The notes beneath the pieces are model-generated. The model made no database searches, was not told where the DNA came from, and saw only the letters and a list, made by a program, of their open reading frames with translations. A DNA stretch of 63,622 bases, the filler included, from Hyphochytrium catenoides (Eukaryota > Protista > Hyphochytriomycota), in assembly GCA_900088475.1 (NCBI GenBank). It is 10 parts of 10 records of this genome, joined end to end, with 100 filler letters (N's around TTAATTAATTAA, not from the genome) between each part and the next. Parts side by side here need not be neighbours in the genome. Positions count along the whole stretch, not along the records: positions 1 to 19,728 come from FLMG01000343.1; 9 more parts are not named here. One strand, 5' to 3'. Positions 9,350 through 15,328 of this stretch are shown piece by piece. The translations under genes and the position numbers were made by a program. Position 1 is the stretch's first letter. Every line of letters starts with the position of its first letter.

Positions 9350-12300
9350 CTACGAGTCTTCGACAGACCAACGATTCATGTTGGAGATGTCCGCGTAAAG
9401 TTCATCCCAGTCCTTGTTGTCATCTACGCTCGGCAAGGGACTACTACTCTCTTGGACTAAGGGTGCTCTGGGGGGCTCTCTCATCCCGTACAGAGAGGGG
9501 ATTGAGGGAGGCCGTACCAAACGGCTAAGTAAAGATTCCTGCTCTACAACTGCAGGAGCAAGCGGATGGAGATTCGGCTCTGCAACACCCACAGCCCGGA
9601 GTGGGTCACTCTTCCCATCATCTCCCCATCCATCTCTCTTGGAGTCATGAAGGAGCCAAATAGAACTGCCAGTGGTGTTCTGCATTGGGAGAAAGAGTCT
9701 TAGAGAGCTTTGTAACCTTGCCAGGAAACATAGCGAAATTGTTTGAGAGAGGAGACAGTCTTTAAGGGCAACCAACACTAAGAAGCACTAGAGGGACAGC
9801 CTCAAGTCAATCATGCACGAGACGCTGAGGAGTGACCCCAATGGTTACTTGCCTGGAAGGCATCCTCGTGGCTGTCCCAAGGCATAACAGTTGATGGCTG
9901 CTCTCTGAATGGGTTGGTGAAGTCTATTGCGCTGTTGTCTATGGTCAAGAAGCCTGCCAAAGAATTAGAATCATCTCCTACAAAGATGCATAGATAAAAA
10001 CAAGAGGAAAGAGAGAGAGGGCAAAAGATAGAGACAATGGAGAAAGAAAAGACGTACGATACTAACTATAACCCCTGTTATCTGCTGTGACTAGATGGAG
10101 GTTAGGAACAGTCTACAACATCAAAGCAGCTAAGCAAGTCTCACCCTGTGGCTCCATTAGGTGAGTATCAGGATGTCTGGGTGGTGATTGGTGGTGCTCT
10201 GGCTCTCTCCTTTGAGGCAGCTCTCTTTCGAGAACAATGGGTTCTTCTCTAGGAAAAGGTACGCCCTCCACATGATCTTCCCCAGCTGGAGATGCAGGCA
10301 AGGCGGGCACAGGCTCTGGGCTGTGTGCTATTGAAAGAAGAGGGTGGGGAACTCTACTATCGGGGGTCTGAATGACATCCATTGCGGTCCAGTTGTCGAG
10401 ATGATTGGCAGGAAGGAGGAACGGTCAGTGCAGACATAAAGCAAAGGAGTACCTCTATCTCTTACCTTGGAGACGCGGACAAATCTCTGAGGTTCGATCC
10501 CCACAGTCTGCGCTTTGAGCCGATAGCAGGAGCAGAGGTTCAGGACATCGTAACGGTGGAATCGATTCATTGGCGGCAAGTCTATGGAGTCCGCTTCTTT
10601 GGAGGCAAGGAGCTTGTCCAACGTCTCTTCTATTTCTCTCAGAAGTCCTGGCTCCTCTTTCGCGAACTTCACGAGGGCATCCGAGTACGAGAAGGACTCT
10701 TCCGTAGACGGAGCTCTACCAGTCGAAGCAGGCAGACCTTCTTCCTCAGGACTAGAAGTCCGTGGTACACCAGACGCTGCTTTATTACCCTGCTTGGCTG
10801 CTTGCTGGCTTCTCAGCTCCTTCATTGCCGCGGTGGACAGCAAAATGGTAGGTACAAAGCTCTCGGACGTCTACAAGACATTCGAAACAGTTACAAGAAG
10901 GCAAAAAGAGAGCGACCGACCTCAATCAATGGCCCTACCTTTGTGACCAGCAGCATCCGCTTTGAATCTGTTCCTGAGATGGATGAGCGTAGTCTGTAGG
11001 AGGCTGAAAGTTGAAGGATTGCTTCTTGTTCCTCTCGAGAGGACGGAATGATAGTCGAGCTACCTCCCACAGGAAGGTCAGAGAGCATACGCTGAAACTT
11101 TCTCTCCGTGGCCTTTACCAAGTCAAGGTTTTTGGCGGCAAATGAGGTCAAGGAAGATGGGTAGCCACTTCGCCTAAAGCGGGAAGATTGGCTCGTCGGC
11201 CTTAATGATTGCAACACTGAAGCTTGATCCTTTCCTCGAGCTGGTTCTCTTTCCCTTGAGCTTCCGTAGTTCGCCCGAGGATAAGCCTCTTCTGATCTGC
11301 TAGAAGAAGGACCAGAACTCCCGTTTATATTTGCGGTAGTCCTCTCGCCGCCTGTTGCCTTGGGTGGAAGGTCATTAGACTTCGCCGCCGCCGCCGCCGC
11401 CTTGAGACACGCTTCGTCGCATTCAAGATACTCCGCACTACTACCTCTGACAAGCTCCTTCCGTCGTCCGCAACGACAAGCAATGCTGTGTACCCTAAGG
11501 ATGAAAGTAGGTAAGTCTTGGACTAAGGACTATAACGGCAGTGGGAACGAAAGGCATAAAATTGCAGAAAAGTTTGAAAACAGATCAAAAGAAACAAAGG
11601 GGCTAAAGGATTTCACTCCTTAACCAATGGGATACATCGTCCGAGTTAAGCTGGTAAGCAACAGAATGCAGTATTGACTGTTACCTTCGAGTTGTCCCCC
11701 TGCTCAGCCCAGCAGCAGGAGGAGCTAGAGTTGGCCCTTCGAGCTTCTTTTCGACCCTCTCAGCACTAGGCTCAGGTATGGCCGTAATGGTGGGACCACT
11801 ACCGGTGCCATCATTAACCCCACCTGCCGAGGCAGGCGCAGGGGCGGCCTTCTTCTTCACGATTTGGAGCTCTGTGAAATCTGCCCATTCCAGCCTTGCT
11901 GCTGTGCCAGTCTTGGAGTCGTAGCTAGCCCTAGAAGAGCCAGGCGGAACTCTTCCTGTCACCACCTGCTGCAAGGTGTTCTCTACGTCCATTACTAAGT
12001 TGAGATGATCAGCTCCAAAGGCAACCAGAGAGGACGAGTAGCCATAGGTATTCCCGAACGATGGGGGTTGCTGCTCAGAAGCTACCGACAAGAGAGATGC
12101 TGGGATCTGGCTGTCTTCGGTCTGTAAGGAAACACCAGTAAGAACAACTACAAGTAAAAAGACGTAACGTTGACCCTTTCCCTACTCCTCTCACTTATAA
12201 ACGCAATGACCTCTTGGTCCTATCGCTTCTCCTAAGACGCAAGTTTCGAAATGACTCACCTTCCGGATCTCGATGTACCTATTTGGGTCAACGCCAAACA

Positions 12301-15300
12301 TCGCTGTCCGCACTGAGTACTTTGGCAGCCACTCTAGGACCACATCTCGCGTCTCTCTGTCCATTGGAGGGAGGCGAATCGAATCTCCCACTTCCTCCAG
12401 GCGGATCAAATCTTCTAACATCTCCTCAATATCCAATACCATTCCCACATTGTCTCTTGCGAAGGCCAAGACTGAAGGGGAATAGATCGTCTCGTACCGT
12501 CTCCCAGTGCGGGCAAAAATGGCACTGACTGAGGAAAGAAGCTTTTTCGGGATGATGCTGTCGGGTGTCTGCAGCATGCGAGACGGTTTAGTTAGTTGTT
12601 ACTGCAGCCACAGAGACTTAGATTTGGACATATCCTCTCCTCAACGAAAAGGGGCCACACCACGCCTCTTGGAAGGCTAGCGTATGTATCAAAGGAGTAA
12701 GGAGCAGTGAAGAGCTTCACTACAGCTTCAGTAGAACTTAAGGCGGCTGAAGGAACTCCAAAGAACCAAGATGTAAACGGCGAAAATCAAAGGTCATCGG
12801 TCGAAGGAGATACCGTTGCAGGGTGTGACGTAATAGCTTGCAGGTCTACCATACCTTGCAAACTTCTATGTATCGATTTGGATCGGTGCCTTTCATAGCG
12901 ATAGATACATTATAGTAGGATAGGAGCTGTAGCACGTACTCCCGTGAGACTCGGTCCATAGGAGGTAACTGTGCTCGTGCTAGAGGTTCCGGCTCATTGG
13001 CTTCGTAACCCTCTCCCCTCCTGCTCCCTAACAGGTGTTCCACACGCTTTCCCTTATGCTCTTTGGCATAGTGGGAAGAAAGGTCATTCACATTTTCAAA
13101 GACGATGAACTTCTGGTCCAAGCAGAACTTCTCCTATAAAATGAGACAATGACTACTGGTTAGATTCACCTACAGTCAAGTCGGGGGTGAAGGAGGAAAA
13201 ATGGTCGTGCTCCGAGTCCCATGCGTTCTATGAGAACGGAGACAGTCAATTCACATCGGTCCTACCTCGCATAAATAGTGAGCGTCTCGGAAGTGCTTCA
13301 ACAAGTCTGAGTATTCATTGTAATAGCGCCACCGATGTGTGTCCAGTCTTCTACACAGATGACAGCTATAGTGCCTCTCGGTTAGGTGCGCCTTGAACTG
13401 GGCCTGGTTGAATGAGCGCACAGAGCAAAATTTGCAGAGAGGGTGTCCGTCGAAGTCAGGACTACCGTCTCCATCCCTGATATGTCTCTCTAATTGATCT
13501 CTAGTATACACTGGTTGTTCCTGAATAAATAACTACAGAGAATATTGTCAGACCATATGCTGTTACCCTCAGTCAGGAGATGGGCATAACAACAAGAAAG
13601 AGGGAGATTGCGCACAGTAGCAAATGCATAGAGAACCCAAGCTGTAGAATTATCAGCGGACTCCTTCAGAGTTCTTGAGACGTTGGAACTTGTGTCCGAC
13701 TGAGAGGGATCACATCAACATATTCAGGAGTGAGGAGCAAAACCGTCACAGCAAGAACAGCCTGCAATCGTCGAGGGCATTATTACCTTCCTCTCTCTTA
13801 AACAAACTTCACAAATATGCTGCTGATGAGCGCTGCGGATGTGAGATAGAAAGGACTTCTCGTTAAGAAACTTAACTCCGCACGATGGAACCCTGCAACG
13901 AAAGTTCCTGTTGGGTTAAGAGCCGAGGTCAGCACTACTACAATGTCCATGGGTCAAAAATGAAGTTTGTGCAGTTGAGTCAAGACCGCGAAAATGAGAC
14001 GAAGGTAGTAAGACAGCGACGGGATAGCCTTTCATGGCTAGCGCCATCGCCACCTCTTCCTGGCCACTTCTAGCTCCTCAACTCAAGAAGACTCTAAGCA
14101 AAAGCACGACCAGTGACTAAGAGGAAAAAAGCTATACCTGAGGCCATCCAGATGGGTGGCAATGTTGAACGGCAGGTGCATTCTGCTATCTTCATCCCAG
14201 CGGTATCCAGCGGAATCGGAGGTTAAAAGAGCCTGCGCTTGACTAAAGGTCAAGCCCAACGTCGTAATGCCAATAGCGCTATCTAGTTTGGCCCTGCAAT
14301 TTGAGCACTGATCATTCTTCATCAATTGCCTCATCCGGGCATAGCATAGACTACAAGCTCCATAATGACCACATTTCCCTATGACGTAGCATCGCGTCTC
14401 TCCGTCTATGGCGGATCCACAATTGATACAGAGTCCAGAAGGAGAAGCCGAAGTTGAAGATTGGCGCCTGGCACTATCAAGGGCTACTAGCGGAGTAAGT
14501 GGTGGTCCAGTGCTAAGGTCAAAAGAGCTCTCTGGAGGACCCTCCTCCCTTGTCGCACCTCCCCATTTATTGGAAGGCAAGGCAGACCGGGTTGTCGAAA
14601 GTGAAACCAACCCTTGACCCTCATCAGTCTTGGCAGTATTTGTTGGCCTAGAAAATGGGCTGGGAGATCGCGCAGGGGGCGCGAATGCAATGGGCACAGA
14701 GAGGTTTGAAGACTTTCCTACGCGGACAGCACCACCCATTGTGCGCCTCTCAGCCGCATCGGACAGTAAGACCTCAGGGACAATACTACCGATAACCTGC
14801 ATGTAAGAGGAACGGAAAGAAGCCGATTAGACCTAAAAAATATTGTGATTGGATACCTCTAAACGACGCAGGGGCAGAGTAAAAACCGATGGAGCGCAAC
14901 AGAGACCTTTAGAGTCCCCATCAGTATAAGATAAAATCGGCCTAACAGTGCAAGCTGACAACAAATCCCACCTTTGTCACTTTGATCTGGCGATTGGGAT
15001 CCGTGCCAACCAACTGGACCTGCAGACCATAGAATGAGCACAAGGAGGCAATCTTCTCCCGTGTATCACGGTCCATAGCAGGTAGAGTGGCAGAGGAGCT
15101 CACTCCTCCCTCTCTAATCAGCCGGATGAGCCGTCTCTCTACATCCTTGACCAAGTTCAGATTGCCTCTAGCAAATGCTAGTAGGCTGCTGGAGTAGGTC
15201 GAGCTGCTCGCAGTGGAATTCCTTGGCTTAGGTTGAGAATCACTAAAGCTCTTCAGAACCCTTGGGCCAGGGGTATATTGCGCCGTTGAAGACGCAGCAA

Positions 15301-15328
15301 CCTTGCTGGCCCAGCTTGTACGCTGCAT
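9350..15328 (-). CDS. Hel2/ZNF598-like RING + C2H2 E3 ligase fused to multiple NF-X1-type R3H-like modules and an NF-X1-like Cys finger (multi-exon; ends approximate)
   Basis: RING: CINC..CGHYGACSLCYARMRQLMKNDQCSNCR. Spliced zinc fingers: CRVPSCGVKF..SHIRSAHQQHICEVCLRERK|LFIQEQPVYTRDQLERH..GHPLCKFC..HLTERHYSCHLC..YYNEYSDLLKHFRDAHYLCE. Repeated module: Y..SL..FA..N..V..E..L..LPPM.R..R..L...Y...G.DP.R...V.K|T.DS..P..LLS. Cys finger IACRCGRRKEL..LECDEAC at about 11400-11495. Confidence 0.85.

Follow-up and report, generated by a model that had tools for sequence, protein, structure and literature searches.

We analyzed a window of 63,622 nucleotides (filler included) from the stramenopile protist Hyphochytrium catenoides (assembly GCA_900088475.1), which joins 10 parts from 10 records of this genome. 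Among named organisms, oomycetes have the mitochondrial HSP70 most similar to that of this genome (75-77% identity). The gene of interest is on the minus strand of the first part (FLMG01000343.1). It probably encodes an E3 ubiquitin ligase of the ZNF598 family that acquired, in an older event, a C-terminal tail of the NFX1/Fap1 type; the R3H-like module of this tail was later amplified within the gene to an array of six, and the product would be a specialized paralog that associates with mRNA or ribosomes at several sites. An earlier note on this DNA described a Hel2/ZNF598 core joined to an array of NF-X1/Fap1-type R3H-like modules, and we found every one of these features at the place that it gave, on the minus strand. 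The note also took the fusion itself to be an unrecognized one, but a fusion with a single R3H is already known from other species. What is new is a lineage-specific amplification of the R3H tail within the gene.

The catalytic core has the expected ZNF598-type domains. Pfam identifies RING_ZNF598 (E = 8.5e-6, 26.5 bits) and zf-C3HC4_3 in the open frame at 14086-14826, and zf-C2H2_13 (E = 1e-5) in the frame at 13254-13532; the end of the latter match reaches into the frame at 12849-13133. In a Pfam scan of the whole genome, RING_ZNF598 scored 28.5 bits. All eight zinc ligands of the RING, and every Cys and His of the four C2H2 fingers, align with those of canonical ZNF598 proteins. Exon 4 is 47% identical to a canonical ZNF598 paralog in the same genome (C460; E = 3e-25) and 48% identical to a ZNF598-like protein from Nannochloropsis. 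A third domain of canonical family members, PAH_ZNF598 (PF23202), had no Pfam match in the gene. We conclude that the gene is predicted to encode a ZNF598/Hel2-family RING E3 ligase scaffold, with the RING and the four C2H2 fingers intact, as the earlier note had it.

The locus lies in eukaryotic DNA of about 50% G+C, and its minus strand is a chain of open frames with short stop-rich stretches between them. We set the splice sites by hand, which gave 12 exons and 11 introns of 68-286 bp, all of them GT-AG (Table 1); the mean intron length in H. catenoides is 208 bp (PMC5795050). Ten exons are firm and the two 3' exons are less certain. The spliced frame was joined in a local script only as a test of frame continuity (searches and folds were run exon by exon). 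The phases agree, none of the six 3' variants has an internal stop, and the predicted protein has 1266-1385 amino acids (aa), depending on the choice of 3' splice sites. Five of the donors are at one point, between AAG and GT and straight after the module's conserved Lys, and the exon after each such donor opens with (T/V)-x-(D/E/G)-S-x-(I/V)-P-x-x-L-L-S. Splicing restores the spacing K-x(1-3)-DS-x-(I/V)P-xx-LLS, which is contiguous in annotated and transcript-derived homologs. Because this tail directly follows the R3H in single-protein homologs, homology validates these five junctions.

Table 1. Predicted features of the gene, its R3H-like modules (M1 to M6), and its surroundings. Positions count along the window; bits and E values for modules are from the external profile.
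Feature	Position	Strand	Content
Whole gene model	9350-15328	-	ATG at 15328, TAG at 9350-9352; ~1319 aa as modeled
Exon 1	14972-15328	-	Start codon, Ser-rich leader, M1; Pfam R3H E = 2.9e-6
Exon 2	14138-14796	-	M1 tail motif VIGSIVPEVLLS (14761-14796), linker, ZNF598-type RING (14284-14430)
Exon 3	13787-13907	-	C2H2 finger 1 (13826-13897) and a CxxC pair
Exon 4	13266-13520	-	C2H2 fingers 2 and 3
Exon 5	12855-13133	-	C2H2 finger 4 (13056-13124) and M2 R3H core, single open frame
Exon 6	12260-12568	-	M2 tail motif TPDSIIPKKLLS (12533-12568), then complete M3
Exon 7	11685-12121	-	M3 tail motif TEDSQIPASLLS (12086-12121), vestigial M4, low-complexity linker
Exon 8	10939-11494	-	NFX1-type knuckle CRCGRRKE...LECDEAC (11407-11478), linker, M5
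Exon 9	10466-10870	-	M5 tail motif TSESFVPTILLS (10835-10870), linker, M6
Exon 10	10145-10367	-	M6 tail motif TPDSRVPHPLLS (10332-10367), then Pro-rich stretch
3' part, splicing uncertain	9353-9977	-	Modeled as 9977-9849 plus 9579-9353; DWDELY (9395-9412) near the C-terminus
M1	14972-15199	-	76 bits; complete; N-terminal to the RING
M2	~12855-12980	-	39 bits; R3H core only
M3	12260-12487	-	71 bits; complete
M4	~11849-12043	-	15 bits, E = 3.5e-4, profile positions 9-40; N-terminal helices only
M5	10939-11166	-	40 bits, E = 6e-12; complete but degenerate
M6	10466-10690	-	83 bits, E = 3e-25; complete, best-preserved copy
Neighboring gene	2630-4136	-	Calpain-type cysteine protease (Peptidase_C2)
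Neighboring gene	5510-6360	-	R2R3-type Myb protein
N run	7183-7236		Intergenic, downstream of the gene
N run	15560-15648		Assembly gap
Neighboring gene	16875-19058	-	Aa_trans amino-acid transporter

The RING exon begins with the tail motif of M1, and exon 5 holds both the last C2H2 finger and M2, which places the N-terminal module, the core, and the array in a single reading frame. It is very improbable that we misread several neighboring genes as one (say, a small gene with R3H, one of the ZNF598 type, and one with R3H repeats), or that the repeats are an artifact of the assembly. A short-read scaffold assembly with gaps and a gene model drawn from genomic sequence leave some room for such an error, but it would have to be reconciled with those two exons and with a spliced frame that has no stop between the parts. 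Furthermore, core and module are found together in single-protein homologs from many species, some of them from transcriptomes. Nor does the DNA contain repeats that could mislead an assembler: within the locus we found none at the DNA level except for a 29-nucleotide trace, which argues against an artifact of this kind. With the link through exon 5, consistent phases, and no stop over about 1300 codons, the locus is best described as a single intron-rich gene, which is what the earlier note had proposed.

Pfam recognizes R3H in four frames: 14945-15352 (E = 2.9e-6), 12849-13133 (1e-4), 12194-12598 (5.8e-6), and 10331-10870 (6.9e-9). M6 scores 36 bits, M1 27.6, and M3 26.7 (the cut-off is 26.8), and M2 has a partial match of 22.5 bits; M4 and M5 had no match to Pfam R3H. 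We also made a module profile from 37 external homologs only and ran it on all 413 open frames of the piece of the genome that carries the gene. This profile picks exactly six frames, one upstream of the RING and five downstream, which is the arrangement given in the earlier note. With E > 0.8 for all other frames, the modules lie well outside what chance would produce. Four of the six are complete, one consists of the R3H core only, and one is vestigial (a search of the piece's frames with the external profile found no hidden R3H core for M4). Low-complexity linkers join the modules, which are just 22-37% identical to each other. In every copy, Leu or Ala takes the place of the R3H signature His; M1, M2, M3, and M6 retain the Arg. 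Given the replacement of the His, "R3H-like" is the accurate label. Most homologs retain the His, and yeast Fap1 has Arg at that position, so the loss is not decisive for function.

Several results indicate that the modules are R3H domains of the NFX1/Fap1 type, as the earlier note had suggested. A profile of 11 full-length NFX1 sequences (consensus ...CxCGRR...LxCDxxC...RNRxLAEAxGID...YSDxL...FPPMxRxxRxxVHELAExYG...PxxxLS) matched, across the whole genome, only M6 (E = 3.9e-15), M1 (8e-13), M3 (4e-10), and M2 (5e-3) of this gene and the single module of a paralog, C2567. These alignments cover only positions 771-884 of the profile, that is, the tail. The knuckle in exon 8, which had been noted as a pre-R3H finger of the NF-X1 kind, does fit the NFX1-family consensus CxCGRR...LxCDxxC, the last Cys cluster of NFX1 proteins. 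The likeness to the NFX1 family extends to the R3H module and this last knuckle but not to the NF-X1 zinc-finger array (PF01422), which had no match in the gene's exons or across the genome. We also modeled M6 with AlphaFold2 from a 42-row alignment (predicted local distance difference test score of 90). The best match of the model in the PDB is chain sh of 7zw0, which is Fap1 in the Fap1-80S structure (template modeling score 0.79, root mean square deviation 1.2 Å over 74 columns, E = 1.8e-5); below it are SPAG7, PARN, Smubp-2, and KhpB, with the R3H structures 2cpm, 1ug8, 1msz, and 3gku. By sequence profile, the best PDB match is likewise FAP1 (residues 721-807, E = 3e-14), as found with a broader profile (A3); a profile of the window's modules only (A1) had no match in the PDB. 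Like yeast Fap1 and metazoan NFX1, the gene has the extended R3H module, made of two helices, a core, and a tail, along with the preceding knuckle, and like them it encodes a predicted RING E3. However, NFX1 proteins have one R3H, an NF-X1 zinc-finger array, and an N-terminal RING/PHD, and the gene has neither the finger array nor an N-terminal RING/PHD of the NFX1 type.

Among 1.84 billion representative proteins, the module profile had 117 matches. These fall into three groups: members of the NFX1 family that have NF-X1 fingers, proteins built on a ZNF598 core, and a family of proteins about 890 aa long in which no further domain is known. The unit common to all three has the (E)RNxxLAxALG helix, the helix pair YSxxL...VExxL, the R3H core, and the P-xx-LLS tail. 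We dismissed as spurious the top match in the library (P0001, 3580 aa, 91 bits), which is a repeat protein of bacterial origin and has a Por secretion tail. Members of the third group (P0020, P0022, P0034, P0042, P0057, P0067, P0076, P0081, and P0094; about 860-930 aa, metagenomic) carry the same NFX1-type R3H tail, with an RNxALAxALG helix, the module, P-xx-LLS, and an acidic end, DWDE...LY, and they have neither NF-X1 fingers nor a ZNF598 core. Their N-terminal half contains DPITLEPL...FIDPLNRRDLT, which looks U-box-like by eye; Pfam finds nothing there. The R3H tail may be a portable unit that has been fitted to several kinds of E3. An acidic-aromatic motif (DWDELY or ESDWDEQEALY) at or near the C-terminus recurs in this gene, in C2567, in the family of about 890 aa (P0022), and in P0030, and it could serve as a short linear motif for binding.

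A ZNF598 core with one NFX1-type R3H tail is the standard architecture of annotated ZNF598 proteins in oomycetes rather than a new fusion. For example, a protein annotated as "E3 ubiquitin-protein ligase ZNF598 [Phytophthora ramorum]" (XP_067752039.1, 724 aa; P0102) has the ZNF598 core and one R3H. The combination of R3H, RING_ZNF598, and zf-C2H2_13 is present in about 35 oomycete clusters, including Phytophthora, Peronospora, Pythium, Albugo, Aphanomyces, and Achlya. These oomycete proteins also lack PAH_ZNF598; fungal, plant, and insect members of the family have PAH_ZNF598 and no R3H. All oomycete matches to the Phytophthora ZNF598 are this R3H-bearing ortholog or fragments of it. In a word-based search that scored 8000 candidates, we found no second, PAH-type ZNF598 from an oomycete, although fungal ones of the PAH type did appear, and oomycetes may have no ZNF598 other than the R3H form. 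The fusion with one R3H is also found in the chrysophyte Mallomonas (EukProt/MMETSP) and in further MMETSP transcripts, so in those species it is on a single mRNA, and in the green algae Volvox, Sanguina, and Bryopsis. A full-text literature search on ZNF598 and R3H together turned up no paper on the combination, though it is present in annotated proteomes. Overall, the one-module architecture is widespread (oomycetes, other stramenopiles, and green algae), which partly refutes the earlier note on the terms that it had set, and it is the six-module array that is unmatched.

The relatives with one module differ from the gene in several respects. Like it, the ZNF598 of P. ramorum has RING_ZNF598, zf-C2H2_13, and an NFX1-type R3H, with the RNxRLAxALG helix and the P-xx-LS tail, and the core exons are 33-36% identical to it. 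But the oomycete protein is about 700 aa long, with one C-terminal R3H that has the His, no N-terminal module, and no CxCGRR knuckle; the protein from H. catenoides has about 1300 aa and six modules, none with the His. The green-algal and MMETSP type (P0030, P0079, and Volvox VOLCADRAFT_120687) shares the ZNF598-type RING, the C2H2 fingers, the CxCGRR...LxCxxxC knuckle, and the R3H module with its tail, but its module is present once, with an intact R-x3-H (RAFVH), and there is no array.

We found no array elsewhere: among the 1.84 billion representatives, no protein had more than two matches to the module profile. In a maximum-likelihood tree of 43 modules, five copies from the gene form one group (ultrafast bootstrap 96 and SH-like approximate likelihood ratio test 73; 98% of bootstrap trees). 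The tree pairs M1 with M5 and M3 with M2, and the branches are long (0.45-1.3). The grouping and the long branches together imply that the array arose by old duplications inside the gene. These results support the amplification described in the earlier note and suggest the following history. In the older event, a ZNF598 paralog would have gained the C-terminal tail of an NFX1/Fap1-type protein, consisting of the CxCGRR...LxCDxxC knuckle, two helices, the R3H core, and D/S-x-(I/V)P-xx-LLS. The module of this tail would then have been duplicated within the gene to six copies, of which one came to lie ahead of the RING, one was cut down to the R3H core, and one was left as a vestige.

The H. catenoides genome itself (a draft of 61 Mb in 4759 records) has four ZNF598-like genes. 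C2679 is canonical, with RING, C2H2, and PAH_ZNF598. C460 has the RING and a strong C2H2 block. C2567 has a CCCH finger, RING, C2H2, the knuckle, one true R3H module, and a DWDELY end. The fourth is the gene in the window, with RING, C2H2, the knuckle, six R3H modules, and DWDELY near the C-terminus. We looked for an R3H module in C460 and C2679 and found none. C2567 has the RING that is nearest to that of the gene (42% identity), and the two also share the ZNF598-type RING and C2H2 domains, the CxCGRR...LxCxxxC knuckle, the tail motif, and the DWDELY end. They differ in that C2567 has a single R3H module with RAFVH, an N-terminal CCCH finger, an extra C-terminal domain, and no array. Canonical Hel2/ZNF598 proteins (those of fungi, animals, and plants, along with C2679 and C460) resemble the gene in the RING and in the four C2H2 fingers with all ligands, but the canonical type carries PAH_ZNF598 and no R3H, and the gene carries R3H modules and no PAH domain. 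The gene is not the ortholog of Hel2, nor is it the best reciprocal candidate for Hel2 in this genome: C2679, which has PAH_ZNF598, and C460 are closer canonical candidates.

In C2567 (locus L018, 5262-5653), the module is interrupted by an intron that separates its helix pair from its R3H core. The half-modules of the gene in the window, M4 (helices only) and M2 (core only), break where this intron splits the module, which hints that half-modules were shuffled at the level of exons. In paralogous loci (L019, L010, and L013), the introns are filled with long microsatellites of CT/GA dinucleotides, whose translation reads SLSLSL.

The earlier note regarded ZNF598 and NF-X1 as normally separate proteins. 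In this genome, canonical ZNF598 does exist separately (C2679 and C460), but we found no stand-alone NFX1 gene with three kinds of query (PF01422, one NFX1 protein, and the 11-sequence profile); because the assembly is a draft, the absence is unproven. The only NFX1-like sequences in the genome are the tails of the gene in the window and of C2567. A weak match to the NFX1 query on C229 is an unrelated C-terminal RING. The genome's other R3H genes are of unrelated types (a Smubp-2-like helicase on C69, R3H-SUZ, ankyrin-R3H, and similar).

Several points weigh against our account. The Pfam evidence for the RING and the C2H2 region is borderline (26-28 bits versus a cut-off of 27), and E3 activity and ribosome binding are attributed to the protein from family membership only. 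The gene model was drawn from genomic sequence alone. An exact look-up of its open reading frames gave no match, neither the 3' exons nor the true 5' end is certain, and the assembly gap at 15560-15648 is 230 bp upstream of the start codon. With the signature His lost in all copies and the Arg lost in M5 as well, nucleic-acid binding is not assured. Also, M4 and M5 look decayed, and we found no close ortholog of any exon among the matches.

These last observations (a vestigial M4, a degenerate M5, no R3H His in any copy, no ortholog) would also be expected of a decaying, unexpressed paralog, in which the long open frame would be left over from a gene on its way to becoming a pseudogene. We consider this to be quite unlikely. 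About 1300 codons in 12 exons contain no stop, all of the splice sites are canonical, every zinc ligand of the RING and the C2H2 fingers is retained, and three modules still score 71-83 bits against the external profile. Moreover, the branch lengths in the tree indicate that the modules are old, and over such a time a frame free of constraint would have been lost. The genes around the locus, all on the same strand, are ordinary (Table 1).

How might such a protein work? Hel2/ZNF598 is known to bind collided ribosomes and to ubiquitinate uS10/uS3 (PMC12700985). Two E3s lengthen ubiquitin chains on uS3, namely Hel2/ZNF598, which senses collided ribosomes, and Fap1, which senses individually stalled 80S ribosomes; Fap1 binds the 40S subunit and, at the entry and exit sites, the mRNA (PMC12700985, PMC9953336). 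In our account of a ZNF598-family ligase with an amplified NFX1-type tail, the RING would recruit the E2 and the C2H2 region would provide docking of the ZNF598 type. The R3H modules, on flexible linkers, would bind single-stranded RNA or 40S surfaces at several points, as the homologous Fap1 module may do in Fap1-80S. The protein would thus be an mRNA- or ribosome-associated ubiquitin ligase with avidity for several sites, and a specialized paralog that is distinct from the canonical collision sensor.

Metazoan NFX1 acts on transcription and mRNA stability. The array could similarly serve general regulation of messenger ribonucleoproteins or transcripts, with the same gene and architecture acting as an RNA-tethered E3 and with no part in ribosome surveillance. 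We judge this to be unlikely but worth serious thought. R3H is a general binder of single-stranded nucleic acids (the fold matches include PARN, Smubp-2, and KhpB), the gene lacks the PAH_ZNF598 of canonical Hel2/ZNF598, and more canonical paralogs are available for collision sensing. On the other hand, the nearest relative of the module, by both structure and sequence, is the ribosome-bound module of Fap1, and 40S proteins are the known substrates of the catalytic core's family (PMC12700985).

A bolder form of the ribosome-associated account is that, in a lineage where we found no stand-alone NFX1/Fap1, R3H-bearing ZNF598 paralogs took over Fap1's job. The six-module protein would then be a multivalent reader of several 40S or mRNA sites along a queue or a stalled polysome and would join the branches for collisions and for single stalls in one enzyme. 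We think that this is doubtful.

As judged from sequence and predicted structure only, oomycetes, other stramenopiles, and green algae have ZNF598 cores onto which the NFX1-type tail was grafted, and in H. catenoides that tail is present sixfold, all of which points to a portable 40S- or mRNA-binding unit. Having one copy and six copies in the same genome would amount to a natural test of valency. Furthermore, oomycetes include major crop pathogens, so how R3H-bearing ZNF598 proteins work may be of practical interest.

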